A stretch of 64,000 nucleotides of DNA from Mizuhopecten yessoensis (Eukaryota). A program made the translations under genes and the position numbers. Each line of letters opens with the position of its first letter. Within the stretch, counting starts at the first letter, position 1. The notes beneath the pieces were generated by a model. The model was given only the letters and a program-made list of their open reading frames with translations, was not told the origin of the DNA and ran no database searches. The stretch spans positions 983,570-1,047,569 of the forward strand of contig NW_018403789.1 of assembly GCF_002113885.1 (NCBI RefSeq), in the 5' to 3' direction. Shown one piece after another: positions 691 to 62,313 of this stretch.

Positions 691-869
691 GTAAGTGATT
701 ACTTTGTTTACATAAAAGACTCCAAATTAACACTAGTATAAATATATCATGGTGTAGGTTGTCTATATTAACAGGATAACGATGGCGTTATGACGTGACT
801 GTTAAGTAGCTTTATAAAATCAAATTGGTTTGATACAATGCCGCTCAGGTTTACAAGCCATTTTGTTGG

Positions 870-3085
870 TTCTGATACAATCCTACTTTGGTTGATATGT
901 CATTTAAGTTGTTCTAATTCTATCCTATTCTGGTTAACATGACATCGTAAGTGTTCTGATTCTATACCACTCTGGTTAACAGGACATTGTCGTAAGTGTT
1001 CTGATTCCATCCCCCTCTGGTTAACATGACATTGCAAGTGTTCTGATTCTATCCCATTCTGGTTAACATGACATCGTAAGTGTTCTGATTCTATCCCCCT
1101 TTGGTTAAATTGACATCGTCGTAAGTGTTCTGATTCTAACCCACTCTGGTTTACATGACATCGTAAGTGTTCTAATTATATCCTACTCTGGTTAACATGA
1201 CATTGCAAGTGTTCTGATTCTATCCCATTTTGGTTAACATGACATCGTAAGTGTTCTAATTATATCCTACTCTGGTTAACATGACATCGTAAGTGTTCTG
1301 ATTCTATCCCATTCTGGTTTACATGACATCGTAAATGTTCTGATTCTATCCCCCTTTGGTTAAATGGACATCGTCGTAAGTGTTCTGATTCTATCCCACT
1401 CTGGTTTACATGACATACAGTGTAGTAAGTGTTCTGATTATGTCCTACTCTGGTTAACATGACATCGTAAGTGTTCTGATTCTATCCTACTCTGGTTAAC
1501 ATGACATTGTAAGTGTTCTGATTCTATCCCANTATTTTTATAGTTCTGTTACAACCCCGCTCTAGTAAACATGACATTTTTATAGTTCTGATACAACCCC
1601 GCTCTGGTAAACATAACATTTTTGTTGTTCTGATACAGCCCCGCTCTGGTAAACATAACATTTTTGTAGTTCTGATACAACCCCGCTTTAGTAAACATGA
1701 CATTTTTATAGTTCTGATACAACCCCGCTCTAGTAAACATGACATTTTTGTTGTTCTGATACAACCCCGCTCTGGTAAACATGACATTTTTTATAGTTCT
1801 GATACAATCCCGCTCTAGTAAACATAACATTTTTGTAGTTCTGATACAACCCCGCTCTGGTAAACATGACATTTTTATAGTTCTGATACAACCCCGCTCT
1901 AGTAAACATGACATTTTTNNNNNNNNNNNNNNNNNNNNNNNNNNNNNNNNNNNNNNNNNNNNNNNNNNNNNNNNNNNNNNNNNNNNNNNNNNNNNNNNNN
2001 NNNNNNNNNNNNNNNNNNNNNNNNNNNNNNNNNNNNNNNNNNNNNNNNNNNNNNNNNNNNNNNNNNNNNNNNNNNNNNNNNNNNNNNNNNNNNNNNNNNN
2101 NNNNNNNNNNNNNNNNNNNNNNNNNNNNNNNNNNNNNNNNNNNNNNNNNNNNNNNNNNNNNNNNNNNNNNNNNNNNNNNNNNNNNNNNNNNNNNNNNNNN
2201 NNNNNNNNNNNNNNNNNNNNNNNNNNNNNNNNNNNNNNNNNNNNNNNNNNNNNNNNNNNNNNNNNNNNNNNNNNNNNNNNNNNNNNNNNNNNNNNNNNNN
2301 NNNNNNNNNNNNNNNNNNNNNNNNNNNNNNNNNNNNNNNNNNNNNNNNNNNNNNNNNNNNNNNNNNNNNNNNNNNNNNNNNNNNNNNNNNNNNNNNNNNN
2401 NNNNNNNNNNNNNNNNNNNNNNNNNNNNNNNNNNNNNNNNNNNNNNNNNNNNNNNNNNNNNNNNNNNNNNNNNNNNNNNNNNNNNNNNNNNNNNNNNNNN
2501 NNNNNNNNNNNNNNNNNNNNNNNNNNNNNNNNNNNNNNNNNNNNNNNNNNNNNNNNNNNNNNNNNNNNNNNNNNNNNNNNNNNNNNNNNNNNNNNNNNNN
2601 NNNNNNNNNNNNNNNNNNNNNNNNNNNNNNNNNNNNNNNNNNNNNNNNNNNNNNNNNNNNNNNNNNNNNNNNNNNNNNNNNNNNNNNNAAACCCCGCTCT
2701 AGTAAACATTACATTTTTGTAGTTCTAATACAATCCCGCTCTAGTAAACATGACATTGTTGTAGTTCTGATACAACCCCGCTCTAGTAAACATGACATTT
2801 GTGTTGTTCTAATACAACCACGCTCTAGTAAACATAACGTTTTTGTGGTTCTGATACAATCCCGGTGTAGTAAATATAATATTTGTGTAGTTCTGATAGA
2901 ACCCCGCTCCAGTTAACATAACATTTTTGCAGTTCTGATACAACCCCGCTCTGGTAAACATAACATTTTTGTAGGTCTGATACAACCCCGCTCTAGCAAA
3001 CATGACATTTTTGTAGTTCTAATACAACCCCGCTCTAGTAAACATGACATTTTTGTAGTTCTGATACAATCCTGCTCTAGAATCT
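870..3085. repeat. 42-bp satellite with two diverged sub-arrays, interrupted by an assembly gap
   Basis: Unit GTTCTGATTCTATCCCACTCTGGTTAACATGACATCGTAAGT at ~910-1530, then GTTCTGATACAACCCCGCTCTAGTAAACATGACATTTTTATA at 1535-3080. Confidence 0.95.
1919..2688. other. Assembly gap (770 N)
   Basis: Run of N with the same satellite on both sides. Confidence 1.
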
Positions 3086-21426: not shown

Positions 21427-21497
21427 TTTGTGTCTGATGAAGGTGACAGAGTACTTACGGAAACGAAGTTTACTTGTCATTGAAACGTCACATATAA
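21427..21497 (+). ncRNA. Minimal type I hammerhead ribozyme of the Penelope-like-element type
   Basis: TGTGT-CTGATGA-A-GGTGACAG...(GAAA-capped hairpin)...TTGTCATT-GAAA-C-GTC-ACATA: intact core, extended stem II, palindromic ACGT stem III, GUC cleavage triplet and a 5-bp stem I. Confidence 0.6.
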
Positions 21498-23932
21498 AAT
21501 CTTATTGGTTGTGTGAAAAGAACTTTATAAAATCCATACTTACAAAATGTACCATCCTGAGAATTTCCGAATATTGCAATGGTGATCATCAAGATCGAAA
21601 ACGGGTATCTAAATTTTCGATTGAGTTTTAAATATAAAGGCCCCTCTAAAACGAGATCAATGCATGCAATAACTTCCAATCAAGATATTTATTGATTTTG
21701 TGAAATATGCGGAAAGATAAACGTTAGGTTTATATTTTGAATGACGTACATGCTATCAGTGTATCTGAAGAAGCATTCCTAAGTACACACCAAAATAATA
21801 TGTGGAATGACTTAATAATGGTAAGCTAAAATAAAAATCGAGCGTTATTAACTATGTATCATGTTATTCTAGACATGTAAAGCGTTCTATACTTTATCAT
21901 ACAACAATTAGGAATTAATTCAATACTGATATATTTGGGTATTGTTTTGTCCGTAATGTCAATATCTTATCAATTTTGCATTAAGGACAAAAATGAAACT
22001 TTTTTCGTAACAAGAACTTGCATGGTATGGTTAACATTGCAAATATCAATGAAAAGTCTTACGATACCGCGAACAAAATATATGTACTTTTGTGGTCGCA
22101 ACAGTTTCTGAACCGTTCTCTTCGACTTCGGCATACTCTCTGCTTCCCATCACCCCCATCACCACAGGTCAAACAAAAGTGAGACCTATCTCAGACCTTA
22201 ACGTGGTTGTATTATCTAAACAGCCATCGGCGATGTGTCTGAGCCCAATTATGTCGATATAGCTTGATCACCAGTGTTGTCCCGAATGTTAGCATGCTGG
22301 GGTCTTACTGTTGAAGGAAACCGGAGAACGCGTACAAAACCACGTTGTCGGGAGGAGACCCGGTACCTTTTCACGTCCGATCAAGGAATCGAGCCCTGGT
22401 GAAATGTGAGCGCGTTATCCATCAGTTACTAGACCAGCAACGTTTGAATGATTGTGATATGCGAGATGTTCATTGAATAGCTTATATAACACTATGTTGT
22501 TAATAGTATGTAAGTGTGACAATCAATAAATAAAATGTGGACCAACGTGTTAATTTGAAATTTTGCAACCTATCAGTTAAGGACTTCCCATGTTTTTCTT
22601 GTCCTATTTTCGTGTCGTCATTTCCGTATTGCGTATCGGGCATTCCATTACAGTAGTGTAAATTATTGTAACACCGGGTAAACAATAGTACACGTGCGTG
22701 ACGATGATACATGTATGTCAACACCCGATATCGAGACTTAACTTGGAAATGTGTAATCACACGTACTTCATAAATAAAGCTCATGATACAAAGACATTAA
22801 TTAACTCACGGGAAAAACATTAAAAACACTGACATACGATCAGACGACTTCAAGAAGGTCGTATATGAGGCGCATGAAATTTAGACTCATGTGTGTATTG
22901 TTTACCGACCTCACCTGTACGTATCACGTGCTAACAGTAGTTCACAAGCTCTTGGTCGCTAGGACTTTTGTTGTCGAACGAGTTACGCTCTGTCAGATAA
23001 ATCGGTTCACAAATGCAATAACAATAACTCTGTGAAAATAGTGGTTTGTAAAATATCAAGATTGCTATAAAATGCAAGTGCATGTGCGTGCACGTAATAA
23101 CGGCATACCATACGATAGCCTATGGTTACATATGCACCTGACATGTTAATATACCATGCGTAAGCGGGCTATGGAATGATGTCCAAAGTGTACATGATTG
23201 AGAGTAATTTTGTTCCATAAAAGAATAGTAAATTGACAATTAAATATAGTAATTTAATTCATTTCCGTCTTTTTTTGGTATAGTAAAGAAAACAAGTGTC
23301 ATTGTATAAATTCTATCCCTCTGTAAAAAGTTCCGATTTTTTTTCAAGGTAGACAGCTCTCACCAGGAACAAAAATATTATAAAATATAAAATAAATGAA
23401 TTATAAAGACATTGTGTGCATACGCTTCACTGGTCATTTGTCTGATGAAGATGACAGTGTACTTACGGAAACGAAGTTTACTAGTCATTGCAATGTCACA
23501 TAGAAAATCTTATTGGTTGTGTAAAAAGAACTTTATATAATCCATACTTACAAAATGTACCCTCCTGAGAATTTCCGAATATTGCAATGGTGATCATCAA
23601 GATAGAAAACGGGTATCTACATTTTCGATTGAGTTTTAAATATAAAGGTCCCTCTAAAACGAGACCAATGCATGCAATAACTTCCAATATAAGATATTTA
23701 TTGATTTTGTGAAATATGCGGAAAGATAAACGCTAGGTTTATATTTTGAATGACGCACATGCTATCAGTGTATCTGAAGAAGCATTCCTAAGTACACACC
23801 AAAATAATATGTGGAATGACTTAATAATGGTAAGCTAAAATAAAAAGCGAACGTTATTAACTATGTATCATGTTGTTCTAGACATGTAAAGCGTTCTATA
23901 CTTTATCATACAACAATTAGGAATTAATTCAA
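21428..23932 (+). repeat. ~500-bp dispersed direct repeat (21428-21925 and 23437-23932)
   Basis: Near-identical sequence; paralogous spurious ORFs at 21488-21679 and 23496-23687. Confidence 0.92.
22300..22435 (-). mobile_element. Degenerate SINE with a V-domain-like motif
   Basis: GGAAACCGGAGAACGCGTACAAAACCAC resembles the reverse complement of the V-SINE motif GTGGGTTTTCTCCGGGTACTCCGGTTTCC. B-box-like GGCTCGATTCC on the minus strand. Confidence 0.5.
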
Positions 23933-24320: not shown

Positions 24321-27300
24321 GATCCATACAATTTCAATAAAAAACGCTTTTTGTAACATGTTGTAGGGTTGATTAACAATGTTTCTTTTCATTATTTTAT
24401 TGTTGTTATAGTTTTGAACAATGCCACACGCTCAAAAAATGTGAAAGTGCTGAATTTGACAAAAAAAGTTTGTTCGGTATTTTTTACAAAAAAAATCCCC
24501 AGTTTATCGGAATGCTTAGATTTTCATAAAATCATCTCTACATAGTGACATAACCATTATATGAAACTTCCATTGAACTCTGCTCGCTAATTGCGAAAGG
24601 GTGGAGCCTCCTTAAGCATGAACGTATGCTCACAAAAGTGTGGCAGCTTTAGTTACAGTGATGTGTTTTTAAATTCTTCTTAGACTGACTAAGCTCACAA
24701 TTGCATCGTCCAAATAATGTAAAAGGTCAAAAGGTCACGTGGCACATCGACTTGACGATGCTTGTGACAAGGTTACCGCAAGCGGTATATAATACGCCCG
24801 TCACACTTTGAATGGGCAGATAGTTTTATCGCTAAGATATATGAAATATTTGTGAGTAGTTGATATTTAAGATGAAAAAGTTCAACATAGCTGGTAGATG
24901 AATGAGTGTAATAAAACATCTTGGAACGCATTCAGTATTGAATTAATTAATCCAATGAGAATAAGTCAATTAATTTGGTCAGATAATTGTGTGATTACAC
25001 TCACTCTATTGATTTAGGGAGCATACCTTCATCAATTACAGTTGGAAAATGATAGTTACCCAAATTCACCGAGCTCTCATAGTAAATAATCATGTGTCCT
25101 ATGAAGTTTGAAGTTTATCTGTTAAAAATTGCTCGATATATCGAGCGGACACTGTTTCAGCAATTGATCATTGTTTTTTTGCGATTGGTAAACGTACCAA
25201 GATAATTTGGACGTTATCTTAAAATAAACTTGATAAAAGTGAGAAAGAATCATCCCCGGATATTTTGGAAGTAGCTGAACTCTGACAGAATTGTTTTGGA
25301 TATAGACAAAACAAAATATATGACATTTAATGAGTCATATGCAATATAATAATCTTTTTATTTAAGAGTTAGGAGATAGAGATAAAAACAAATGGCACTT
25401 TCTGTGGTGCTTTATTTTGATTCGCTGAAGCAAAGATTAAAGTACAACATCAAAAAGGTCACAGGAGCAACAACAATAGGTTATGAAGACGGATAGGCTA
25501 TTTTGTTGCGAAGTCTAGGGTTTTACAGACCTAAATCTACTGAAACATATCCATTTGACATTTTAGAAAACATCACTTTAGGTAAAAAGAAAAAAAACTC
25601 TCCGCATAGAGTGTATCGCTAGCTTTGTACATACACCCATAAATCTAGCTGACGATTGAAATCCTGACGTATTGATTAATTTAAAGGAAAATAAATAGTA
25701 TAAATACATTTGCCCTCGTGTATTTGACAAGTCTGATTCATATACTACTTCTACCAAGCGTATTATAGATGGCTAAGACACATCACAATTAAAACAAGTC
25801 ATATAACGTATAATGTAATGCTAGTTGGCTGAAACTTGTTGTTAATACACAGATATTTTTTGGAAAGAGGAATCAACTGATCTTAACTACATTGTTAGAG
25901 CTGGCCTATAGTGAAAATATGTGCACATTGTATTAGTTACCAAATTTCAGAGGAATTTCATTACTTGCTTGAATGTCCATCGCTTTCTTCTTACAAAACC
26001 TCATTAATACATTTTTGGCTAAACCGAATTTGACTTACCTGTAGTTTATAAATGTAATTACTCTAAAGATACAAACACATTCATGAAAAGTCCATACTGT
26101 AACTAGAATATTTTACATAATTTTACTTACCTAATCAGAGACGACCATTAAACTATTGTTTCTAAAATAACGTTTAGTTAGTAGAAGAATGGAGTGAGCT
26201 TTGTTGAATGAGCCACGAATGGCGCTCATTCGCAAGAACCATGAAGGATGTTTTGCCGCACTGGAGTAAAAGTCATCAGTAGTTTTTTAGAGTAGTCATA
26301 CCAGATAAGATATCGCAACAGCTTTGATACAAAACCAAAGTAAAAAAATGCTGAACATGTCGAAAGAGGGCGGAGAATAAAAAAATAATGATCCGGTTGT
26401 ATGTGTTAAAACCCAAAGTGCGAAGTGTTTGGTTGCACTATGATGTAATCCAACGCTTGTGACACCAATTTAACCACACGAAGTTGACATATCAAAGTCC
26501 TTTTGTCTGGCAGACCACACATCATCCCTCGGGACAACCGTCATCTAGAATTACACCATAAATGACCCATGTTTCCTTCAGACACGCTCACCGCAAGAAC
26601 GGTGTTTCCTTTTTGCCGCAGAAGTGGCAAAACACAAGTGTGTAATCCAGTCGCTCGATGGTCATATATGGGTTCTGTTTTGACACGTCATCAAGCTATA
26701 TCGCCATAATTGGGCTCAGACACATCGCCGATGGCTGTTTAGATAATACAACCACGTTAAGGTCTGAGATAGGTCTCACTTTTGTTTGACCTGTGGTGAT
26801 TGGGGTGATGGGAAGCAGAGAGTATGCCAAAGTCGAAGAGAACGGTTCAGAAACTGTTGCGACCACAAAAGTACATATATTTTGTTCACGGTATCGTAAG
26901 ACTTTTCATTGATATTTGCAATGTTAACCATACCATGCAAGTTCTTGTTACGAAAAAAGTTTCATTTTGTCCTTAATGCAAAATTGATAAGATATTGATA
27001 TTGTCTTTCCCCCTTTTTTCAGTGTTATGATGTAGGATTTGTCAACAAGATAACCCAATCCCACACACCACTCACATCATCAGGACATTACGGACAAAAC
27101 AATACCCAAAACTTAGACTAGTCTGCACAGTTTCCAGATCAGTTGCGCATAGAACATGTTTGAGATATTCTGGGTAACTTTACACGAACTCGCTCAAAGG
27201 TTGATGCAGAAGTGGAATAATAATCCATCTAGATATGGCGTAATTAGATGCCATAAACGGTCTGTGCGGCGGTTCACCAATGCGATGATACAGTTGTTAT

Positions 27301-34757: not shown

Positions 34758-35675
34758 ATGAGTTGAATATTCTGTAACAAGTGTAGAGCGGTGCTTGATG
34801 AGTTAAATATTCTTAACAAGTGTAGAGCGGTGCTTTATGAGTTAAATATTCTGTAACAAGTTTAGAGCGGTGCTTGATGAGTTAAATATTCTGTAACAAG
34901 TGTAGAACGATGCTTGATGAGTTAAATATTCTGTATCAAGTGTAGAGCGGTGCTTGATGAGTGAAATATTCTTAACAAGTGTAGATCGGTGCTTTATGAG
35001 TTAAATATTCTGTTTCAAGTTTAGAGCGGTGCTTTATGAATTAAATATTCTGTATCAAGTTTAGAGCGGTGCTTTATGAATTAAATATTCTGTAACAAGC
35101 TTAGAGCGGTGCTTGATGAGTCAAATATTCTGTAACAAGTGTAGAGTGGTGCTTTATGAGTTAAATATTCTGTTTCAAGTTTAGAGCGGTGCTTGATGAG
35201 TTAAATATTCTGTTACAAGTTTAGAGCGGTGCTTGATGAGTTAAATATTCTGTTACAGGTGTAGAGCGGTGCTTGATGAGTTAAATATTCTGTAACAAGT
35301 TTAGAGCGGTGCTTGATGAGTTAAATATTCTGTAACAAGTGTAGAGTGGTGCTTTATGAGTTAAATATTCTGTATCAAGTGTAGAGCGGTGCTTGATGAG
35401 TTAAGTATTCTGTAACAAGTTTAGAGCGGTGCTATATGAATTAAATATTCTGTATCAAGTGTAGCGCGGTGCTTGATGAGTTCGATATTCTGTAACAAGT
35501 GTAGAGCGGTGCTTGATGAGTTAAATATTCTGTTACAAGTTTAGAGCGGTGCTTTATGAATTAAATATTCTGTATCAAGTGTAGAGCGGTGCTTGATGAG
35601 TTAAATATTCTGTAACAAGTGTAGAGCGGTGCTTGATGAGTTCAATATTCTGTAACAAGTGTTGAGCGGTGCTTG
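34758..35675. repeat. 40-bp minisatellite, ~23 copies
   Basis: Unit ATGAGTTAAATATTCTGTAACAAGTGTAGAGCGGTGCTTG. Confidence 0.97.
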
Positions 35676-39254: not shown

Positions 39255-42200
39255 GGGGACTTCCCTGCCGTTATGGGAGGACTACCCTGTCGTTATGGGG
39301 GGGCTACCCTGTCGTTATGGGGGGATTACCCTGTCGTTATGGGGGGACTACCCTGCCGTTATGGAGGGATTGCCCTGTCGTTATGGGGGGACTNGGGGGG
39401 ACTACCCTGTCGTTATGGGGGGACTACCCTGTCGTTATGGGGGGACTACCCTGTCGTTATGGGGGGACTACCCTGTAGTTATGGGGGGATTATCCTGTCG
39501 TTATGGGGGGACTCCCCTGTACTTATGGGGGAACTACCCTGTCGTTATGGGGGGACTATCCTGTCGTTATGGGGGGACTACCCTGTCGTTATGGAGGGAT
39601 TGCCCTGTCGTTATGGGGGGACTACCCTGTCGTTATAGGGGAACTACCCTGTCGTTATGGGGGCACTACCCTGTCGTTATGGGGGACTACCTTGTCGTTA
39701 TGGGGGGACTATCTTGTCGTTATTGGGGACTACCCTGTCGTTATGGGGGGACTACCCTGTCGTTATGGGGGGACNTTGTCGTTATGGGGTGACTATCCTG
39801 ACGTTATGGGGGGACTACCCTGTCGTTATGGGGGGACTACCCTGTCGTTATAGGGGAACTACCCTGTCGTTATGGGGGCACTACCCTGTCGTTATGGGGG
39901 ACTACCTTGTCGTTATGGGGGGACTATCTTGTCGTTATTGGGGACTACCCTGTCGTTATGGGGGGACTACCCTGTCGTTATGGGGGGACTACCCTGTCGT
40001 TATGGGGGGACTACCCTGTCGTTATGGGGGACTACCCTGTCGTTATGGGGGATTACCCTGTCGTTATGGGGGGGACTACCCTGTCGTTATGGGGGGACTA
40101 CCTTGTCGTAATGGGGGACTATCCTGTCGTTATGGGGGGATTACCCTGTCGTTATGGGGGGACTACCCTGTCGTTATTGGGGACTACCCTGTCGTTATGG
40201 GGACTACCCTGTCGTTATGGGGGGACTACCCTGTCGTTATAGGGGGACTACCCTGTCGTTATTGGGGCACTACCCTGTCGTTATGGGGGGACAACCCTGT
40301 CGTTATGGGGGGACTATCCTGTCGTTATGGGGGACTACCCTGTCGTTATGGGGGACTACCCTGTCGTTATGGGGGTCTACCCTGTCGTTATGGGGGGACT
40401 ACCCTGTCGTTATGGGAGGACTACCATGTCGTTATGGGGAACTACCCTGTCGTTATGAGGGGACTATCCTGTCGTTATGGGGGGACTACCATGTCGTTAT
40501 GGGGGGACTACCATGTCGTTATGGGGGGACTACCATGTCGTTATGGGGGGACTACCATGTCGTTATGGGGAAATACTCTGTCGTTATGGAGGGACTATCC
40601 TGTCGTTATGGGGGGACTACCTTGTCGTTATGGGGGGACTATCCTGTCGTTATGGGGGGACTACCAAGTCGTTATGGGGGGACTACCATGTCGTTATGGG
40701 GAAATACTCTGTCGTTATGGAGGGACTATCCTGTCGTTATGGGGGGACTACCTTGTCGTTATGGGGGGACTATCCTGTCGTTATGGGTGGACTACCCTGT
40801 CGTTATGGGGAAACTACCTTGTCGTTATGGGGGGACTATCCTGTCGTTATGGGGGGACTACCTTGTCGTTATGGGGGGACTATCATGTCGTTATGGGGGG
40901 ACTACCCTGCCGTTATGGGGGGAACTACCCTGTCGTTATGGGGGATATACCCTGTCATTATGGGGGGACTACCCTGTCGTTAACGGGGGACTACCCTGTC
41001 TACTCGTTATGGGGGAACTACCCTGTCGTTATAGGGGGACTACCCTGTCGTTATAGGGGGACTACCCTGTCGTTATAGGGGTACTACCCTGTCGTTATGG
41101 GGGAACTACCCTGTCGTTATGGGGGAAATTCCCTGTCGTTATGGGGAACTTCCTCGTCGTTATGGGGGGACTCCCTTGTCGTTATGGGGGGACTACTCTG
41201 TCGTTATGGGGGACTAACATGTCGTTATGGGGGACTCCCATGTCGTTATGGGGGACCACCCTGTCGTTATGGGGATCTACCCAGTCGTTATGGGGGGACT
41301 ACCCTGTCGGTTTGGGGGGGACTACCCTGTCGTTGTGGGGGACCTACCCTGTCGTTATAGGGGTACTACCCTGTCGTTATGGGGGGGACTATCCTGTCGT
41401 TGTGGGAGGACTACCCTGTCGGTATGGGGGGACTACCCTGTAGTTATGGGGGGATTATCCTGTCGTTATGGGGGACCTCCCCTGTCGTTATGGGGAACGA
41501 CCTCGTCGTTATGGGGGGACTCCCCTGTACTTATGGGGGAACTACCCTGTCGTTGTGGGGGACCTACCCTGTCGTTATGGGAGGACTTCCCTGTCGTTAT
41601 GGGGGGAGTACCCTGTCGTTATGGGGGTACTACCCTGTCGTTAGGGGGGAACTATCCTGTCGTTATGGGGGGCCTACCCTGTCGTGATGGGGGAACTTCC
41701 CGGTCGTTATGGGGGGACTACCATGTCCTTACCGGGCGAATACCATGTCGTTATGGGGGGACTACCATGTCCTTACCGGGCGAATACCATGTCGTTATGG
41801 GGGGCTACCTTGTCGTTATGGGGAACTACCCTGTCGTTATAGGGGGCCTCCCCTGTCGTTAGGGGGGGACTACCTTGTCGTTATGGCGGGACTACCCTGT
41901 CGTTACTGGGGAACTACCCTGTCGACTCGTTATGGGGGACTACCCTGGCGTTATGGGGGAACTACCCTATCGACTCGTTATGGGGGGACGACCCTGTCGT
42001 TGTGGGGGGACTATCCTGTCGGTATAGGGGGACTATCCTGTCATTATTGGGGAACTACCCTGTCGTTCCGGGGGGATTAACCTGTCGTTATGGGGGAACT
42101 TCCCTGTCGTTATGGGGGACTAACATGTCGTTATGGGGGACTCCCATGTCGTTATGGGGGACTACCTCGTCGTTATGGGGGGACTCCCTTGTCGTTATGG

Positions 42201-44098
42201 GGGGACTATCCTGCGGTTATGGGAGGACTACCCTGCCGTTATGGGGGGACTCCCCTGTACTTATGGGGGGACTACCCTGGCGTTATGGGGGGACTACCCT
42301 ATCGACTCGTTATGGGGGGCCTACCTTGTCGTTATGGGGGGACTAACCTGTCGTTATAGGGGTACTGCCCTGTCGTTATGGGGGAAATTCCCTGTCGTTA
42401 TGGGGAACGACCTCGTCGTTATGGGGGGACTCCCCTTTCGTTATGGGGGGACTTTCCTGTCGTTATGGGGGGAGTACCCTGTCGTTATGGGGGACCTACC
42501 CTGTCGTTATAGGGGAACTACCCTGTCGTTCCGGGGGGATTAACCTGTCGTTATGGGGGAACTACCCTGTCGTTATGGGGGGACTACCCTGTCGTTATGG
42601 GGGAAATACCCTGTCGTTATGGGGAACTACCTCGTCGTTATGGGGGGACTACCCTGTCGTTATGGGGGGACTATCCTGTCGTTATGGGAGGACTACCCTG
42701 TCGTTATGGGGGACTACCATGTCGTTATGGGGGACTACCCTGTCGTTATGGGGGGACTACCCTGTCGACTCGTTATGGGGGGACTACCCTGTCGACTCGT
42801 TAGGGGGGAACTACCCTGTCGTTATGGGGGGACTCCCCTGTCGTTAGGGGGGCCTACCCTGTCGTTATGGGGGAACTACCCTGTCGTTTTGGGGGACTAC
42901 ACTGTAGACTCGTTATGGGGGAACTACCCTGTCGTCATGGGGGGACTACCCTGTCGTTATGGGGGGATTACCCTGTCGTTATGGGGGGAACTACCCTGTC
43001 GACTCGTTATGGGGGGACTACCCTGTCGGTATGGGGGGACTACCCTGTCGTTATAGGGGGACTATCCTGTCGATATGGGGGTACTACCCTGTCGTTATGG
43101 GGGGACTGCCCTGTCGTTATGGGGGACTACCCTGTCGGCTCGTTATGGTGGAACTACCCTGTCGTTATGTGGGGACTACCCTGTCGTTATGGGGGAAATA
43201 CCCTGTCGTTACGGGGAACTACCTCGTCGTTATGGGGGGCCTACCCTGTCGTTATGGGGGACTACCCTGTCGTTATGGGGGAAATACCCTGTCGTTATGG
43301 GGGACTACCATGTCGTGATGGGGGACTACCCTGTCGTTATGGGGGACTACCCTGTCGACTTGATATGGGGGTACTACCCTGTCGTTATGGGGGACTATCA
43401 TGTCGTTATGGGGGGACTACCCTGCCGTTATGGGGGGACTACCTTGTCGTTATGGGGGGACTACCCTGTCGGTATGGGGGGACTATCCTGTCGTTATGGG
43501 GGGACTACCCTGGCGTTATGGGGGGACTACTCTGTCGTTATGGGGGGACTACCCTGCCGTTATGGGGGGACTACCTTGTCGTTATGGGGGGACTACCCTG
43601 TCGTTAGGGGGGGACTACCCTGTCGTTATGGGGGGAACTTCCCTGTCGTTATGTTGGGACTACCCTGTCGCTATGGGGGGGACTACCCTGTCGTTATGGG
43701 GGAACTTCCCTGTCGTTATGGGGAACTACCTCGTCGTTATGGGGGGACTACCCTGTCGTTATGGTGGACTACCCTGTCGTTATGGGGGACTACCATGTCG
43801 TGATGGGGGACTACCCTGTCGTTATGGGGGGACTCCCCTGTCGTTATGGGGGAACTACCCTGTCGTTATGTTGGGACTACCCTGTCGTTATGGGGGGGAC
43901 TACCCTGTCGTTATTGGGGGACTACCCTGTCGTTATGGGGGACTACCCTGTCGACTCGTTATGGTGGAACTACCCTGTCGTTATGTTGGGACTACCCTGT
44001 CGTTATGGGGGGAACTACCCTGTCGTTATGTTGGGACTACCCTGTCGTTATGGGGGGACTACCCTGTCGTTATGGGGGGACTACCCTGTCGTTATGGA
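39255..44098. repeat. G-rich 21-22-bp minisatellite, ~220 copies
   Basis: Unit TTATGGGGGGACTACCCTGTCG. It accounts for all the GGLPCRY/WGDYPVVM ORFs. Confidence 0.99.
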
Positions 44099-44186: not shown

Positions 44187-44315
44187 CGTATTTGTAGTGG
44201 AAACGGAAACTGTCGCTGTAACAGGTGTGTCTGTATCAACGGGTACATGGGACCCACGTGTAGTGAGGGTAGGGAGATCGTACCGAAACAATCCTCATCC
44301 AAGTCATTCATGTCG
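44187..44315 (+). CDS. Integrin-beta-like exon E (I-EGF4 plus linker): RICSGNGNCRCNRCVCINGYMGPTCSEGREIVPKQSSSKSFMS
   Basis: CCATAG acceptor and GTAAGT donor; phases 0/0. Confidence 0.92.
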
Positions 44316-44645
44316 GTAAGTTTTACCTTGAACGTAGCACTACGAAACATAAAACTACAGAGTCGTCAATATAATCAACATGGAAGTCCATCGTGAGCGA
44401 TGACGTAGTCAGTACGCCTGAGATGTGATCGTAGACCAAAAGCTTTTGCACAGATGACGCCACACTTTGGACGGGCGGCAACATATATGTATCTTATCAT
44501 TTGATTCCATAAAGAAATATATATTGTTGTTGATCAGCTTTCTGTTATTTCAGTTTAATCAAAAATAGCAAAACACCAAATATTATTTTGAATATATAGT
44601 CCAATCATACTCTGCTGACAAATTATTTCTGTTATAAATTTGCAG

Positions 44646-44778
44646 GATTTTACCGACGTGTGTAATTTATGGATACCGTGTGTTCTGTGTGTGGGTTTTA
44701 ATTCCGGTGAGAAAGATGTTGAAGAATGCGAAGAAGATTGCAGCATAAATAGAATTCACATGGTAGACGCATTGCCAG
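44646..44778 (+). CDS. Integrin-beta-like exon F (beta-tail, N-terminal half): DFTDVCNLWIPCVLCVGFNSGEKDVEECEEDCSINRIHMVDALP
   Basis: TTTGCAG acceptor and GTAAGC donor; phases 0/1. Beta-tail motif C.....CV.C..F..GE......C...C. Confidence 0.93.
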
Positions 44779-45564
44779 GTAAGCCAGTTTATGAACGAGG
44801 AATGTTGTGTTATCTTTTCAACAAGATTATGAACCAAATCTAGTGATGATTTACCCAGATTTAGTCACTGTATGATGCAGCGATAGCCTGGTTACGCGTA
44901 TCACTGAGAGTTTATATTAACACGCGCTAGAACGATACGTAAAGAAAGACAACTCCGTTGCATGCAGGTCAATGGGCGCATTATCTTTCCCTCTTCACTA
45001 ATAATAAAGAAGGTAGGGGGAGAGGGCGTTTGTCCACAGCAATTAAACAGCAAGTATAGGTGTAGTAATTTATAATTAATTTGCATATTCATCTTTAACA
45101 ATATTGTTTTTCACGCTTGAATTCAATTTTAAGATAATTGAACTGAATGTCAAATGCATATGTTCAGTTTAACGCGCAGTAGAGATTACCAGTCCATGGT
45201 AGGTCTTACTGAAAGCATTAATGTGATTTGCCTTCCTAAAATGTGTACAAATAAACTTGTTGATTCTTAAATTGCCTTGAAGGATTGATAGTGAAATATA
45301 AAATCGGCAGAAATGATTCGTCATTGTCTGAAATAGATTTCTGTCGAGGGTTAGAAATTCAAAGAATATTTCCCTCGAGACAGATAATGTTCTGCCATAG
45401 TTAACGTTGAATTACCGGTCAGAACGCCCTTTTCTGCAAGAGGACCTTTTATCTGTCTAGATGTTTACAAAATCATAGTTTACAATTCAAAGTGGTAAAC
45501 ATATGATGGTTGTGTCAGAAGTATTATGACTCCCATTTCATTTTCTTTCTTTTTTATGTTTCAG

Positions 45565-48682: not shown

Positions 48683-48782
48683 TCATCGGTTCTCCAAGTA
48701 AACTTTGATTCCGTGCTCCGCCCTGAGTATCAGTTGGGTGAATGGGGTTGCTTCATGATTTGGATCAAACACAATCTTAAAT
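48683..48782 (-). CDS. CYP4: CYP4-family P450 terminal exon: (R)FKIVFDPNHEATPFTQLILRAEHGIKVYLENR*
   Basis: TTTTATAG acceptor, phase 2. CYP4 C-terminal motif LILR...GI...L. Confidence 0.93.
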
Positions 48783-49283: not shown

Positions 49284-49349
49284 CTTCGTATAACTCTTGA
49301 AATGACCACCTTCATTTCATTCATTGCAAAATTCTGGCCGATGCAATTT
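49284..49349 (-). CDS. CYP4: CYP4 exon with the heme-ligating Cys: (R)NCIGQNFAMNEMKVVISRVIR
   Basis: CCAG acceptor and GTGAGA donor; completes FSAGPRNCIG. Confidence 0.97.
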
Positions 49350-50497: not shown

Positions 50498-50580
50498 CTT
50501 GGTCCCGCAGAAAAAGGTACATAACTGAAAGGATCTCTTCCTCCTGAGTTATCCTCCAGAAACCTCTCGGGCTTGAAAGT
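50498..50580 (-). CDS. CYP4: CYP4 exon (PERF and start of heme motif): TFKPERFLEDNSGGRDPFSYVPFSAGP(R)
   Basis: TTTAG acceptor and GTAAGT donor; phases 0/2. Confidence 0.97.
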
Positions 50581-51689
50581 CTAAACATCAAATATCTTAA
50601 AAGTCAACATCAAATATCTTAAAACATGAAGTTGATTGGAATAAATATATTTGGTCGGTGTTTGAAATATTGTGCAAAAAACTGCATGTCTTAATATCTT
50701 AGCACTTAGTGTTGGGCTACTTACTATTCATATATCTATAAATATAAAACATACATACAATGTACTTGCGTTTTATACCACGATATAATTTTTACTCAAT
50801 GCTGTATATTTAACTCCGTTTTTGTCCAGATAAACATATGCATATTAAAAGTCATACTTTGTAAATGTCTGGATACACCGTCGCGTAATCTACTTATACA
50901 AATTGTGATGTTTACTTCGCCGTAAGTTTCGTAGTACGATTTATGAAAGTTTGACTGCAATTAGATTGTTTGTCTAGATACACCGCATAATTTTCTACTA
51001 ACAGCTCAATTCGTTACTGTTCATATACACTAAAGTTAACATAACTTTGAACACGTTTGTGACTGTCTACACATATTGAGCGTAGTTTAATTATTATTAT
51101 GGAAGAGTGGGACATCATTCTTCTTTTGCATAAAGACTATCAAATGTAATTTACCTGAGAAATATATTTATTTCATCTGTATGCGTGCAAAAATAGTTAT
51201 ATGTTGAGGAATTTTAATGAATAACAATATTTTTCAATTATCCAAAGAAATGTCACAGGGAGGTTTATCATAACAAACACCATAAACGTTGACGCAGTTT
51301 TTTTCGGACAAGTTATAACCAAAAGTCCAGGGTAGGTGCTCGAAACGGATTTGTTTTCATCATTTTATCTACTTATTCGTTGTGAAAATGAAAATAAAGA
51401 CAAACATATTTCCTTCGTACACTTTATATATATTTAACTCTTTGCTAAAGCAAATGTGCAAGCATCTCATAGTAAGAAATACATGTACAACACAAGTTTG
51501 ACATGACACTCAACGTTTGATTACATAGGTATATGTTTACATACTCCGCCAACTTATCTACTCACGATTGCGTACGTATCTGTCTAGATACACGGCATTG
51601 TTATCTATTAAGTATATTTCCTGATACGCTTCCCTGTTATCTTATTATTACTGCGTTGGTATCTGTCTAGATACACAGCATCACTTCTT

Positions 51690-54600
51690 ACATTGGGTTT
51701 TTTACAGACGTCCGGAATATCTGTCCAGACACACAGCATCTAATCTACTCTTACCTTGTTGTCTTTCCAGACGTCCGGGGCATCTGTTCAGATACACATT
51801 GTGTAATATATACTTATCTTGTTGTCTTCCCTGACGTTCGCAGTATCCGTCCAGATACACAGTATTTAATCAATACTTACCTTGGTGTCTTTCAGACCTC
51901 CGGAGTATCTGTCTAGATACACACTATTTAATCAATACTTACCTTGGTGTCTTTCAGACCTCCGGAGTATCTGTCTAGATAGACAGTATTTAATCAATAC
52001 TTACCTTGTTGTCTTCCCAGACATCCGGAGTATCTGGACAGATACTCCGGATGTCTGGGAAGACACCAAAGTAAGTATTGATTAAATACTCTGTATCTAG
52101 ATAGATACTCCGGACGTCTGGGAAGACATAATCTGGACGTCTGGAAAGACAACAAGGTAAGAATAGATTAGATGCTGTGTATCTGGACAGATACTCCGGA
52201 TGTCTGGGAAGACACCAAAGTAAGTATTGATTAAATACTCTGTATCTAGATAGATACTCCGGACGTCTGGGAAGACAACAAGATAAGTATATATTAGTAT
52301 TGATTAAATACTGTGTATCTAGTCAGATACTCCGGACGTCTGGAAGACAACAAGGTAAGTATTGACTAAATGCTGTGTATCAAGACTTCCGGACGTCAGG
52401 GAAGACACCAAGATAAGTATTGATTAAATACTGTGTATCAAGACAGATACTCCGGACGTCAGGGAAGACAACAAGATAAGAATATATTACACAATGTGTA
52501 TCTGAATAGATGCTCCGGACGTCTGGAAGACACCAAGGTAAGAATTGATTAAATACTGTGTATCTGGACAGATATTCCGGAGGTCTGGAAGACACCTGAA
52601 TAGATGCTCCAGACGTCTGGAAGACACCAAGGTAAGAATTGATTAAATACTGTGTATCTAGACAAATGCTCCGGATGTCTGGGAAGACACCAAAGTAAGT
52701 ATTGATTAAATACTCTGTATCTAGATAGATACTCCGGACGTCTGGGAAGACAACAAGATAAGTATATATAACACAATGTGTATCTGAATAGATGCTCCGG
52801 ACGTCTGGAAGACACCAAGATAAGTATTGATTAAATACTGTGTACCTGGACAGATCCTCCGGAGGTCTGGAAGACACCAAGGTAAGCATTGATTAAATAC
52901 TGTGTATCTAGACAAATGCTCCGGATGTCTGGGAAGACACCAAGGAAAGTATTGATTAAATACTGTGTATCAAGACAGATACTCCGGACGTCTGGGAAAA
53001 CACCAAGGTAAGTATTGATTAAATGCTGTGTATCTAGACAGATACTCCGGAAGGCTGGAAGACACCAAGGTAAGTATTGATTCAATACTGTGTATCTGTC
53101 CAGATACACAGTATTTAATCAATACTAATATATACTTATCTTGTTGTCTTCCCTGACGTTCGCAGTATCCGTCCAGATACACAGTATTAAATCAATACTT
53201 ACCTTGGTGTCTTCGCTGACGTCCGGTGTATCTGGACAGATACTCCGGACGTCTGGGAAAACACCAAGGTAAGTATTGATTAAATACTGTCTATCTAGAC
53301 AGATACTCCGGAGGTCTGAAAGACACCAATGAAAGTATTGATTTAATACTGTGTATCTAGACAGATACTCGGGACGTCTGGGAAGACACCAAGGTAAGCA
53401 TTGATTAAATACTGTGTATCTGGACAGATACACAGTATTTAATCAATACTTATCTTGGTGTCTTCCCTGACGTCCGGAAGTCTTGATACACAGTATTTAG
53501 TCAATACTTACCTTGTTGTCTTCCCTGACGTCCGGAGTATCTGTCCAGATACACAGTATTGAATCAATACTTACCTTGGTGTCTTCCCTGACGTCCGGAG
53601 TATCTGTCCAGATACACAGCATCTAATCTATTCTTACCTTGTTGTCTTTCCAGACGTCCAGATTATCTGTTCAGATACACATTGTGTAATATATACTTAT
53701 CTTGTTGTCTTCCCTGACGTCCGCAGTATCCGTCCAGATACACAATATTTAATCAATACTTACCTTGGTGTCTTCCAGACGTCCGGAGTATTTGTCTAGA
53801 TACACAGCATTTAATCAATACTTACCTTGGTGTCTTCCCAGACGTCCGGAGTATCTATCTAGATACAGAGTATTTAATCAATACTTACTTTGGTGTCTTC
53901 CCAGACATCCGGAGTATTTGTCTAGATACACAGTATTTAATCAATACTTACCTTGGTGTCTTCCCAGATGTCCGGAGTCTCTGTCTAGATACACAGTATT
54001 GAATCACTACTTGCCTTGGTGTCTTCCAGACGTCTGGGAAAACACCAAGGTAATATCTAGACAAATACTCCGGACGTCTGGAAGACACCAATGTAAATAT
54101 TGATTAAATACTGTGTATCAATACAGATACTCCGGACGTCTGGAAGGCACCAAGGTAAGTATTGATTAAATGCTGTGTATCTAGACAAATACTCCGGATG
54201 TCTGGGAAGACACCAAGGTAAGTATTGATTTAATACTGTGTATCTGGACAGATATTCCGGAGGTCTGAAAGACACCTGAATAGATGCTCCGGACGTCTGG
54301 AAGACACCAAGGGAAGTATTGATTAAATACTGTGTATTTACACAGATACCCCGGACGTCTTTAAGACACCAATGTAAGTATTGATTAAATACTGTGGATC
54401 TAGACAGATACTCCGGACGTCAGAGAAGACACTAAGGTAAGTATTGATTAAATACTCTGTATCTGGACAGATACTCCGGATGTCTGGGAAGACACCAAGG
54501 TAAGTATTGGTTAAATACTGTGTATCTAGACAGTATCTGAACAGATGCTCCGGACGTCTGGAAGACACACTACGGACGTCTGGGAAGACACCAAGGTAAG

Positions 54601-57600
54601 TATTGGTTAAATACTGTGTATCTGGACAGATACTCCGGATGTCTGGGAAGACACCAAAGTAAGTATTGATTTAATACTGTGTATCTGGACAGATACTCTG
54701 GACGTCAGGGAAGAAAACAAGGTAAGTATATATTACACAATGTGTATCTGAATAGATGCTTCGGACGTCTGGAAGACACAAATGTTAGTATTGATTAAAT
54801 ACTTTGAATCTAGCCAGATACTCTGGAGGTCTGGAAGTCAACAAGGTAAATATTGATTAAATACTGCGTATCAAGACAGATACTCCGGACGTCAGGGAAG
54901 TCAAAAAGGTAAGTATTGATTCAATTTAAATACTGTGTATCTGGACAGATATTCCGGACGTCTGGGAAGACACCAAGGTAAGTATTTATTAAATACTGTG
55001 TATCTAGACAGTATCTGAACAGATGCTCCGGACGTCTGGAAGACACCAAAGTAAGTATTGATTAAATACTCTGTATCTGGACAGATACTCCGGACGTCAG
55101 GGAAGACAACAAGGTCAGTAATGATTAAATACTGTGTATCTAGACAAATACTCCGGACGTCTGGAAGACACCAAAGTAAGTATTGATTTAATACTGTGTA
55201 TCTAGACAGATCATCCGGACTTCAGGGAAGACAACAAGGAAAGTATTGATTAAATACTGTGTATCAAGACAGATAGTCCGGACGTCTGGAAGACACCAAT
55301 GTTAGTATTGATTAAATACTTTGAATCTAGCCAGATACTCTGGAGGTCTGGAAGTCAACAAGATAAATATTGATTAAATACTGTGTATCAATACAGATAC
55401 TCCGGACGTCTGGAAGACAACAAGGTAAGTATTGATTAAATACCGTGTATCTAGACAAATACTCCGGACGTCAGGGAAGACAACAAGGTAATTATATATT
55501 ACACAATGTGTATCTGAATATATGCTCCGGACGTCTGGAAGACCCCAAGGTAAGTATTGATTAAATATTGTGTATCTGGACGGATACTGCGGACGCAAGG
55601 GAAGACAACAAGATAAGTATATATTACACAATGTGTATCTGGCGGACGTCTGTAAGACACCAAGGTAAGTAGTGATTCAATACTGTGTATCTAGACAGAG
55701 ACTCCGGACGTCAGGGAAGACACCAAAGTAAGTATTGATTAAATACTCTGTATCTGGACAGATACTCCGGAAGTTAGGGAAGACAACAAGGAAAGTATTG
55801 ATTAAATACTGTGTACCTGGACAGATACTCCGGAGGTCTAGAAGACACTAAGGTAAGGATACCCCGGACGTCTTTAAGACACCAATGTAAGTATTGATTT
55901 AATACTGTGTATCTGGACAGATATTCCGGAGGTCTGCAAGACACCTGAATAGATGCTCCAGACGTCTGGAAGACACCAAGGAAGTATTGATTAAATACTT
56001 TGTATCTTCTAGACAGATACTCTGGAGGTCTGGAAGTCAACAAGATAAATATTGATTAAATACTGTGTATCTGGCCAGATACTCCGGAGGTCTGGAAGTC
56101 AACAAGTTAAGTATTGATTAAATACTGTGTATTTAGACAGATACTCCGGACGTCTTTAAGACACCAAGGTAAGTATTGATTCAATACTGTGTATCTGGAC
56201 AGATATTCCGGACGTCTGGGAAGACACCAAGGTAAGTATTTATTAAATACTGTGTATCTAGACAAATGCTCCGGATGTCTGGGAAGACACCAAGGTAAGT
56301 ATTGATTCAATACTGTGTATCTGGACAGATATTCCGGACGTCTGGGAAGACACCAAGGTAAGTATTGATTAAATGCTGTGTATCTAGACAAATACTCCGG
56401 ATGTCTGGGAAGACAACAACATAAGTATATATTACACAATCTGTAATATATACTTATCTTGTTGTCTTCCCTTACGTCCGCAGTATCCGTCCAGATACAC
56501 AATATTTAATCAATACTTACCTTGGTATCTTCCAGACGTCCGGAGTGTCTGTCTAGATACACAGTATTTAACCAATACTTACCTTGGTGTCTTCCCAGAC
56601 GTCCGTAGTGTGTCTTCCAGACGTCCGGAGCATATATCCAGATACACATTGTGTAATATATAATTACCTTGTTGTCTTCCCTGACGTCCAGAGTATCTGT
56701 CCAGATTCACAGTATTTAATCAATACTTACTTTGGTGTCTTCCCTGACGTCCGGAGAATCTGTCTAGATACACAGTATTTAATCAATACTTACCTTGGTG
56801 TCTTAAAGACGTCCGGGGTATCTGTCTAAATACACAGTATTTAATCAATACTTACCTTGGTGTCTTCCAGACGTCCGGAGTATCTGTCTTGATACACAGT
56901 ATTTAATCAATATTTACCTTGTTGACTTCCAGACCTCCAGAGTATCTGTCTAGATACAAAGTATTTAATCAATACTAACATTGGTGTCTTCCAGACGTCC
57001 GAAGCATCTATTCAGATACACATTGTGTAATATATACTTACCTTGTTGTCTTCCCAGACATCCGGAGTATCTGTCTAGATACACAGTATTTTATCAATAC
57101 TTACCTTGGTGTCTTCCAGACCTCCGGAGTAGCTGTCCAGGTACACAGTATTTAATCAATACTTATCTTGGTGTCTTCCCTGACGTCCGGAGTATCTGTC
57201 CAGATACACAGTATTTAATCAATACTTACCTTGGTGTCTTCAAGACGTCCGGAGTATCTGTCTAGATACACAGTTTTTAATCAATACTTACCTTGGTGTC
57301 TTACAGGGGTCCGGAGTATCTGTCTAGATACACAGTATTTAATCATTACTTACCTTGTTGTCTTCCCTGACGTCCGGAGTATCTGTCTAGATACACATTA
57401 TTTAATCAATACTTACATTGGTGTCTTCCCTGACGTCCGGAGTATCTGTCCAGGTACACAGTATTTAATCAATACTTACCTTGTTGTCTTCCCTGACGTC
57501 CGGAGTATCTGTCCAGGTACACAGTATTTAATCAATACTTATCTTGGTGTCTTCCCTGACGCCCGGAGTATCTGTCTTGATACACAGTATTTAATCAATA

Positions 57601-58314
57601 CTTACCTTGATGTCTTCCCTGACGTCCGGAGTATTTGTCTAGATACACAGTATTTAATCAATACTTACCTTGGTGTCTTTCAGACCTCCGGAGTATCTGT
57701 CTAGATACACAGTATTTAATCATTACTTACCTTGTTGTCTTCCCTGACGTCCGGAGTATCTGTCTAGAGACACAGTATTTAATCAATACTTACCTTGGTG
57801 TCTTCAAGACGTCCGGAGTATCTGTCTAGATACACAGTATTTAATCAATACTTACCTTGGTGTCTTACAGACGTCCGGAGTATCTGTCTAGATACACAGT
57901 ATTTTATCAATACTTACCTTGGTGTCTTCCAGACGTCCGGAGTATCTGTCTTGATACACAGAATTTAATCAATACTTACCTTGGTGTCTTATAGACGTCC
58001 GGAGTATCTGTCTAGATACACAGTATTTAATCAATACTTACCTTGGTATCTTCCAGACGTCCGGAGTGTCTGTCTAGATACACAGTATTTAATCAATACT
58101 TACCTTGGTGTCTTTCAGACCTCCGGAGTATCTGTCTAGATACAAAGTATTTAATCAATACTTACCTTGGTGTCTTCCTGACGTCCGGAGTATCTGTCCA
58201 GATACACAATATTTAATAAATACTTACCTTGGTGTCTTCCCAGACGTCCGTAGTATCTGTCCGGATTCACAGTATGTAATATACACTTACCTTCGTGTCT
58301 TCCCAGACGTCCGG
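51690..58314. repeat. 62-63-bp satellite (~105 copies, mixed orientation) made of the CYP4 exon/intron junction
   Basis: Unit CCGGACGTCTGGGAAGACACCAAG|GTAAGTATTGATTAAATACTGTGTATCTAGACAGATACT. The terminal copy is the real exon end. Confidence 0.97.
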
Positions 58315-58486
58315 ATGGTAGTGCGTACTCCTCAAACTGACACTCATCTCAGTGCCTGCCGGGTATACATTTCCGTCTATTTCAGCAGGAATTGTCAGCA
58401 CACGATTCACACCTGGCACCGGTGTATACATCCTAAGAACTTCCTTCAGAAACAGTGCTAGCTTCGGGGTGTTCGCAAGGTCACTC
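58291..58486 (-). CDS. CYP4: CYP4 exon (K helix): (W)SDLANTPKLALFLKEVLRMYTPVPGVNRVLTIPAEIDGNVYPAGTEMSVSLRSTHYHPDVWEDTK
   Basis: CTCAG acceptor and GTAAGT donor; phases 2/0; ExxR motif KEVLR. Confidence 0.96.
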
Positions 58487-61860: not shown

Positions 61861-62313
61861 GATAACAATGATAACAAAAGTATCATAAAATGTCACAGAT
61901 AACAATGATAACAAAAGTATCATAAAATGTCACAGATAACAATGATAACAAAAGTATCATAAAATGTCACAGATAACAATGATAACAAAAGGATCATAAA
62001 ATGTCACAGATAACAATGATAACAAAAGGATCATAAAATGTCACAGATAACAATGCTAACAAAAGGATCATAAAATGGCACAGATAACAATGATAACAAA
62101 AGGATCATAAAATGTCACAGATAACAATGATAACAAAAGGATCATAAAATGTCACAGATAACAATGATAACAAAAGTATCATAAAATGTCACAGATAACA
62201 ATGATAACAAAAGGATCATAAAATGTCACAGATAACAATGATAACAAAAGGATCATAAAATGTCACAGATAGCAATGATAACAAAAGGATCATAACATGT
62301 CACAGATAACAAT
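61861..62313. repeat. 37-bp minisatellite, ~12 copies
   Basis: Unit GATAACAATGATAACAAAAGGATCATAAAATGTCACA. Confidence 0.97.

Follow-up and report, generated by a model that had tools for sequence, protein, structure and literature searches.

An intron of a cytochrome P450 gene of the CYP4 clan in the scallop Mizuhopecten yessoensis is largely taken up by about one hundred copies of the gene's own exon–intron junction. The locus lies on contig NW_018403789.1 of RefSeq assembly GCF_002113885.1, within the 64,000 nucleotides (nt) from position 983,570 to 1,047,569 that were analysed here (the window, numbered from its first letter), and the gene is read from the minus strand. Each unit of the array carries the end of the exon that encodes the K-helix, the 5' splice site (donor) and a short piece of intron. 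We consider the array probably to be a lineage-specific intronic minisatellite, tolerated as a nearly neutral side effect of the very large share of tandem repeats in scallop genomes, rather than a regulatory device.

Read on the minus strand, that of the gene, the exon closes with CAT CCG GAC GTC TGG GAA GAC ACG AAG, which is followed by GTAAGT and 33 intronic nt, after which the 63-nt pattern repeats. The unit reads CCGGACGTCTGGGAAGACAC(C/G)AAG, then GTAAGT, then 33 nt of intronic sequence, and its exonic part corresponds to the 24 coding nt that close the K-helix exon (58291–58314, PDVWEDTK). Tandem Repeats Finder (TRF) reported overlapping arrays of 62–63 bp at 51701–58315, with coherent higher-order periods of 125–314 nt, and an nhmmer search with the 63-nt consensus returned 106 copies, all in 51576–58314 and none in the rest of the window. 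An original prediction, made from the letters of the window alone, had described a unit of this composition in about 105 copies, with the real exon end as its terminal unit; the gene-strand sequence and the nhmmer count agree with it. The first, authentic unit (58252–58314, minus strand) matches the array consensus at 23 of 24 exonic nt, at all six donor nt and at about 25 of 33 intronic nt (identity 0.83–0.87 to typical units), and further units follow it directly, as in the boundary-spanning minisatellite of the human F7 gene. As in arrays of the F7 type, the following intron reiterates donors that are identical or near-identical to the true one. The intron measures 7,710 nt (50581–58290), about 6.7 kb of which is array. 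Exact copies of the unit's 18-nt core stand at 51576 and 51659, and two isolated relics of the GTGTATCTAGACAGATAC core, with 3 mismatches each, start at 50966 and 50861 (50861–50983, minus strand), against a chance expectation of 0.06 such matches for the whole window; degenerate units do trail off towards ~50870, as had been proposed.

The donors are not lined up head to tail in a single series. Its units fall into seven blocks (S1, A1, S2, A2, S3, A3 and S4) separated by six flips, with 49 units in gene sense and 57 of the 106 inverted. Next to the exon lies S4 (56433–58314, minus strand), which contains 30 gene-sense units and most of the perfect decoy donors and is the most homogeneous block (mean pairwise identity 0.87). 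It is followed by A3 (54027–56445, plus strand), with about 38 units that run antisense to the gene; here the pre-mRNA reads ...ATACTTACCTTGGTGTCTTCCCAG/A, at once the complement of the donor and a strong acceptor-like site. Further along the transcript come S3 (53416–54036, minus strand; 10 gene-sense units), A2 (53217–53431, plus strand; 3–4 antisense units), S2 (53092–53226, minus strand; 2 gene-sense units), A1 (52047–53107, plus strand; 16 antisense units) and S1 (51576–52028, minus strand; 7 gene-sense units, decaying towards the 3' end of the intron). Of the six flips, four have their centre within GTATCTnnnnAGATAC, an inverted motif of the unit itself; another is centred in the palindrome GACGTC, which belongs to the exon-derived part, and the remaining one in a near-palindrome rich in A and T. 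A mirror-register test of the flips found the arms 84–91% complementary in any register, a pattern in which unit-by-unit mirror symmetry is not demonstrable. Identities within and between blocks are likewise similar (0.80–0.87), and the order of the inversions is not reconstructible from a block phylogeny.

Mis-assembly of a shorter repeat might in principle produce either the copy number or the flips. The assembly is fragmented (82,659 contigs) and, we presume, based on short reads; the flips, moreover, coincide with palindromes, at which an assembly graph can double back on itself. Public protein collections yielded no independent array-like contigs or open reading frames (ORFs): a word search with a 132-aa array ORF that crosses the A3/S4 flip found nothing at E <= 0.001, and a word search for short protein fragments with the 88-aa open frame of the K-helix exon, which sees only proteins of similar length, gave no candidates. 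Against this, the array contains no runs of N, its units differ enough from one another (13–17%) that most carry unique words, its higher-order periods are coherent, and arrays of like kind occur at two other loci. We therefore judge an artefact to be quite improbable.

The unit belongs to this locus alone. When a 381-nt array probe was run against the 988-Mb assembly it matched only C462:1035238-1041884, and 70 matches, all in C462:1035411-1041796, were obtained with a 39-nt pattern from the intronic part when up to 3 mismatches were allowed, against 0 for the reversed control. The search for the unit elsewhere in the genome, which the original prediction had proposed as a way to refute it, thus found none outside the locus. 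In the same genome, at least 17 P450 exons from paralogues are followed, at exactly the homologous position after the peptide motif PD(V/I)(W/Y/F)xDPx, by a phase-0 intron whose donor is GT, and the orthologue in the scallop Ylistrum balloti shares both the motif and the phase-0 intron position. Because exon tail and intron position are common to the paralogues, the satellite derives from the junction and not the reverse; on this comparative evidence the exon end is ancestral, as first proposed, and the satellite is made from the exon end plus donor. The opposite course of events, in which a satellite that already existed entered the gene and its end unit came to serve as exon end and donor, found no support and, within the reach of the searches made, is refuted by the conservation of the junction among the paralogues and the orthologue together with the absence of the unit from the rest of the genome; its probability appears negligible.

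The gene that carries the array is intact. Exons were handled singly, and whole-protein steps used two database proteins: P0001, the 409-aa 'cytochrome P450 4B1-like' protein of Y. balloti, which was found by a profile-free search with the 67-aa exon, and P0151, 'cytochrome P450 4A25-like [Mizuhopecten yessoensis]' by its NCBI name (499 aa), which was found by a word search with P0001. Residues 226–499 of P0151 map to seven exons of the window at 100% identity and without frame breaks (tblastn). All are on the minus strand, beginning with three upstream exons that match P0151 (63564–63686, 62511–62643 and 59839–59962, the last with the I-helix motif GHDTT). The K-helix exon (58291–58486) encodes residues 352/353–417 (100% identity in tblastn; Pfam PF00067, E = 3.3e-12), and its last 24 nt are the exonic part of the unit. 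The next exon (50498–50580, TFKPERF...FSAGPR; Pfam p450, E = 2.8e-7) is preceded by the acceptor AG at 50581–50582, and both the haem-binding exon (49284–49349, RNCIGQ...) and the last exon with its stop codon (48683–48782) are intact. Overall, PF00067 matches three exons, and the signatures GHDTT (I-helix), EVLR (the K-helix ExxR), KPERF and FSAGPRNCIG (haem-binding FxxGxRxCxG) are as expected of the CYP4 clan; the best named solved relative is CYP4B1 (E = 5e-8). P0151 contains ...HYHPDVWEDTK/TFKPERF..., which is the first donor joined to the exon that starts at 50580; the boundary 50581/50580 before TFKPERF is where the acceptor had been predicted. A young minisatellite (37 bp x 12, 97% matches, 61861–62313) lies in another intron of this gene, between its FLFEG and GHDTT exons.

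The orthologue in Y. balloti (locus L043) is syntenic with the host gene. In both species the P450 gene is convergent with an EGF/integrin-beta-tail gene; in M. yessoensis this neighbour is a plus-strand integrin-beta-like gene with EGF_2 and Integrin_B_tail exons at 44187–44840. The homologous intron of Y. balloti is 635 nt long and has no array, and an alignment of the two introns found no similarity beyond the exon edges and a common TGTATAT just past the donor. Since the orthologue lacks the array, the expansion is confined to the side of Mizuhopecten. Across 256 codons the two orthologues differ by a synonymous divergence (dS) of ~1.15 with a ratio of nonsynonymous to synonymous divergence (dN/dS) of 0.13, which indicates that the host gene has been under long-run purifying selection. 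Pairwise divergence among the units is 13–20%, with no clear block structure, which makes the array far younger than the species split, yet not brand new. Along the unit, conservation is flat, at 0.90 for the exon part, 0.93 for the donor and 0.90 for the intronic part. In 45% of units one G of a GGG is missing, which puts their exon-derived part out of frame. Taken together, flat conservation and frame-breaking deletions leave neither coding nor splice-signal constraint visible and give no sign of selection on the donors. The next intron of the Y. balloti gene (after the PERF exon) contains a 26-bp x 28 minisatellite (L043:24141-24874) whose units carry the donor-like motifs GGGTAAGAG and AGGTATGAT; it starts 62 nt past the true donor, and an origin from a junction is not obvious.

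Arrays of this build are not confined to one gene. A test of paralogue junctions for additional copies of the 24 nt that end each exon, together with its donor, showed that the intact paralogue P0173 carries 44 copies of a 50-bp unit (L045:4667-6890, equivalent to G000:C5402:78666-80889) consisting of ~21 nt of exon tail, GTAAGT and 23 further nt. This array stands directly behind the homologous exon, all of its units are in sense orientation with no flips, and 23 of them are exact copies of AAAGTAAGT. The same intron of P0173 also has an unrelated 24-bp x 74 array (L045:2313-4093). A third CYP4 paralogue (L024:1806-2121, on G000:C660) has 8 sense copies, again with no flips, of a 39-bp unit made of its own exon tail plus GTAGGT; the exon match at L024 contains TAG, and that copy may be a pseudogene. 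Own-junction arrays therefore recur in CYP4 paralogues, as independent arrays each made from the junction of its own gene.

Recurrence has to be read against the density of tandem repeats in these genomes. Own-junction arrays were found at 2 of 55 paralogue donors (in addition to the donor of the host gene) and at 0 of 54 acceptors, while 48 of 843 random non-exonic 20-mers from the same loci lay inside arrays. Counted from a period of at least 10 and at least 3 copies upwards, arrays make up 13.8% of the remainder of the window, 10% of the sequence at the paralogue loci and 21.6% of that at the Y. balloti locus; with the present array included, 23% of the whole window is tandem array. Another scallop genome consists of 21.7% tandem repeats (PMC10225492). 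With so high a load, arrays that start in an exon tail by chance are expected, and the capture of junctions occurs at about the base rate rather than being enriched.

The sequence of the intron nevertheless offers the splicing machinery many alternatives. The authentic donor (58285–58290, minus strand; AAG/GTAAGT, 9/9 to consensus) is the donor that the annotated protein uses. Translation across it gives VSVYYIL and then a TGA (58267–58269, minus strand), the eighth codon beyond the donor, where the open frame ends in ...WEDTKVSVYYIL, as had been noted before. Use of any decoy donor would include this in-frame TGA ahead of three further exon junctions, the classical configuration for nonsense-mediated decay (NMD), and the earlier proposal that decoy use would yield NMD substrates holds at this level. 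Its other element, dozens of decoy donors, stands as well: 30 sense decoys have the perfect AAG/GTAAGT 9-mer and 8 more match at 8/9 positions. Over half of the units, however, are inverted and present acceptor-like sites and donor complementarity instead. There are 39 such acceptor-like sites in antisense units (for example CCTTGGTGTCTTCCCAG/A), with better pyrimidine tracts than that of the true acceptor, whose context is ...tgatgtttag before the exon start at 50580. Along the transcript the signals run as 26 donors, 23 acceptors, 7 donors, 3 acceptors, 1 donor, 15 acceptors, 4 donors, an acceptor and a donor. About 8 nt past GTAAGT the unit also contains ATTAAA and then TGTGT, with 37 gene-sense occurrences in 51576–58290; these hexamers are potential intronic poly(A) signals, each beside a U1 site, and a role of the array in U1-dependent suppression of intronic polyadenylation would be speculation.

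From the decoys and the TGA it could be supposed that decoy donors are used at a low rate and give mRNAs with a premature termination codon that are degraded by NMD, so that array length would set CYP4 output as a cis-acting rheostat. Besides the 38 sense decoys of perfect or near-perfect match and the position of the TGA upstream of three exon junctions, this idea gains from human IFI6 and CBS, in which the first one or two pseudo-sites of comparable arrays are used (PMC1557585). The same source, however, describes the pseudo-sites of F7, LMNB2 and PDGF as silent, and those of IFI6 and CBS as used in only the first two positions (PMC1557585), which weakens the idea because copy number beyond a few units should then hardly matter. 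The inversion of over half of the units, a donor without excess conservation and the occurrence of such arrays at the tandem-repeat base rate also speak against it, and we regard control of expression by array length as unlikely.

The inverted blocks give the transcript a strong potential for self-pairing. Sense and antisense blocks are 84–95% complementary across hundreds of nt: there are 416 inverted pairs of at least 120 nt with complementarity of up to 95%, and inverted arms reach 462 nt at 90%. A 981-nt piece across the A3/S4 flip is predicted to fold into an almost continuous hairpin of -660.6 kcal/mol, compared with -248.5 +/- 9.6 for shuffled sequences (z = -43), and the authentic junction itself lies inside some of the complementary arms (I12, I22). 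The predicted fold has the extended duplex expected of a hairpin-RNA (hpRNA) or endogenous small interfering RNA (endo-siRNA) precursor. The intron could be such a precursor, its duplex edited or diced, with small RNAs that carry the 24-nt exon tail acting in turn on the mRNA of the gene itself; or else the duplex could be required to mask the decoys. The near-continuous stem, the number of long inverted pairs, the inclusion of the true junction in I12 and I22, and the identity of the exon-derived consensus to the real exon at 23 of 24 nt are all in favour. Yet the flips are simply explained by palindromic motifs, and the P0173 array has no flips and its gene is intact all the same, which indicates that a duplex is unnecessary for tolerance; we give this explanation little credence. 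Still more doubtful, to our minds, is a reading in which the inversions are not incidental at all, the modelled duplex hiding ~70 decoy splice signals and yielding edited or diced RNA with the gene's 24-nt exon tail, so that transcription of this CYP4 gene would be tied to feedback through small RNA or the sensing of double-stranded RNA (dsRNA). Were such a built-in feedback to exist, the structure of the array, beyond its length, would be a heritable expression variable.

Several observations weigh against a tolerated, near-neutral minisatellite. The first-donor junction is an annotated one and may have homology alone as its basis, and the comparison that sets junction capture at about the base rate draws on a small sample from a single gene family. 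The 39 acceptor-like sites (TGTCTTCCCAG/A) appear stronger than the true acceptor (TTGATGTTTAG/A), and the order of acceptors and donors creates three pseudo-exons of 82, 50 and 50 nt (54033–53952, 53252–53203 and 52054–52005); mis-splicing through these sites and pseudo-exons is plausible from the arrangement of the signals. Finally, the perfect donor 9-mer is found more often among sense units (31/47) than among antisense ones (19/53; Fisher p = 0.005). This excess was considered as a sign of selection and dropped, as it tracks block age (S4 being the youngest block) and the units are not independent.

The near-neutral minisatellite, which we continue to favour, would have arisen as follows. 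A 63-bp segment across the CYP4 exon/intron boundary was presumably duplicated in tandem, and slippage or unequal exchange, aided by two hairpin-prone motifs in each unit, would have raised the number to about 100 units. Six inversions followed, probably by template switching at the hairpin-prone motifs of the unit (GTATCTnnnnAGATAC and GACGTC). The authentic donor would be chosen in that it is transcribed first and has the true exon context, with the later copies left in the intron, and pairing between sense and antisense blocks probably gives long duplexes in which most of the decoy donors and acceptor-like sites are hidden. On this account the array would persist because it is tolerated.

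Other repeats and duplications lie elsewhere in the window. A 22-bp x 219 array (GGGGACTACCCTGTCGTTATGG, 83% matches; 39255–44097) ends ~90 nt before the EGF_2 / Integrin_B_tail exons. Arrays of 42-bp units stand either side of a 770-nt N gap (1919–2688) in 869–3080, and the units at 869–1531 end in CGTAAGT, a plus-strand donor-like motif. A 40-bp x 23 array (90% matches) at 34758–35675 is a young minisatellite. Near-identical open frames occur in inverted orientation ~4.5 kb apart at 21997–22259 (plus strand) and 26699–26961 (minus strand), with a second duplicated frame nearby (21491–21679 and 23499–23732); the inverted frames are probably a pair of mobile-element copies.

The closest counterparts of the scallop array are a set of human minisatellites that span an exon–intron boundary. 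Intron 7 (IVS7) of F7 contains a 37-bp variable number tandem repeat whose first monomer consists of the final 4 bp of exon 7 plus the initial 33 bp of IVS7; its pseudo-sites are functional but silent, the most upstream site being taken by a 5'-to-3' process (PMC1557585). Further cases are IFI6 (6-16) intron 2 with 25 pseudo-sites, CBS intron 13 with 15–20 repeats, LMNB2 with 10–15 repeats of 100 bp and PDGF intron 4 with 16–18 repeats of 81 bp (PMC1557585). As in F7, the first scallop unit spans the boundary and identical pseudo-donors come after the authentic one; the mature F7 product uses the most upstream site, and the P0151 model, an annotated one, joins the first donor. F7 differs in having 5–9 copies in one orientation with 4 exonic nt per unit, whereas the scallop array numbers ~100 units, each with 24 exonic nt, is inverted six times and has acceptor-like sites and the potential for long duplexes. 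IFI6, CBS, LMNB2 and PDGF share the architecture, with tens of reiterated donors, but as described in that source (PMC1557585) they have no inverted blocks and are all much shorter.

The arrays of P0173 and L024 resemble the host array more closely still, as they share its genome, its intron position and its build (~20 nt of exon tail, a donor and intronic nt), but they consist of their own sequences, with units of 50 and 39 bp in 44 and 8 copies, all in sense orientation. In Drosophila, endo-siRNAs derive from hpRNA loci and from inverted-repeat introns that form dsRNA. Like hpRNA loci, the scallop array combines long inverted repeats that include a fragment of a protein-coding exon with a predicted extended duplex; unlike them, it lies within its parent gene's own intron and is not known to yield small RNAs, and the exon-derived stretch is just 24 nt. 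In a genome with 10–20% tandem repeats such arrays are expected by chance, which cautions that no adaptive story is needed. The array nonetheless amounts to a large natural test of how the spliceosome chooses its sites, with 30 perfect copies of the true donor, ~39 acceptor-like sites that look stronger than the true acceptor and extensive self-complementarity in a single intron, and yet intact exons and purifying selection. Scallops could thereby offer replicated cases for first-come (5'-to-3') donor selection outside mammals, and their arrays could serve to measure the cost of junction-seeded repeats. By its architecture, the scallop array belongs to the known F7-type class; it stands out by its scale and by the inversion of part of its blocks, through which acceptor-like sites and self-complementarity on a kilobase scale are added to that type of array.

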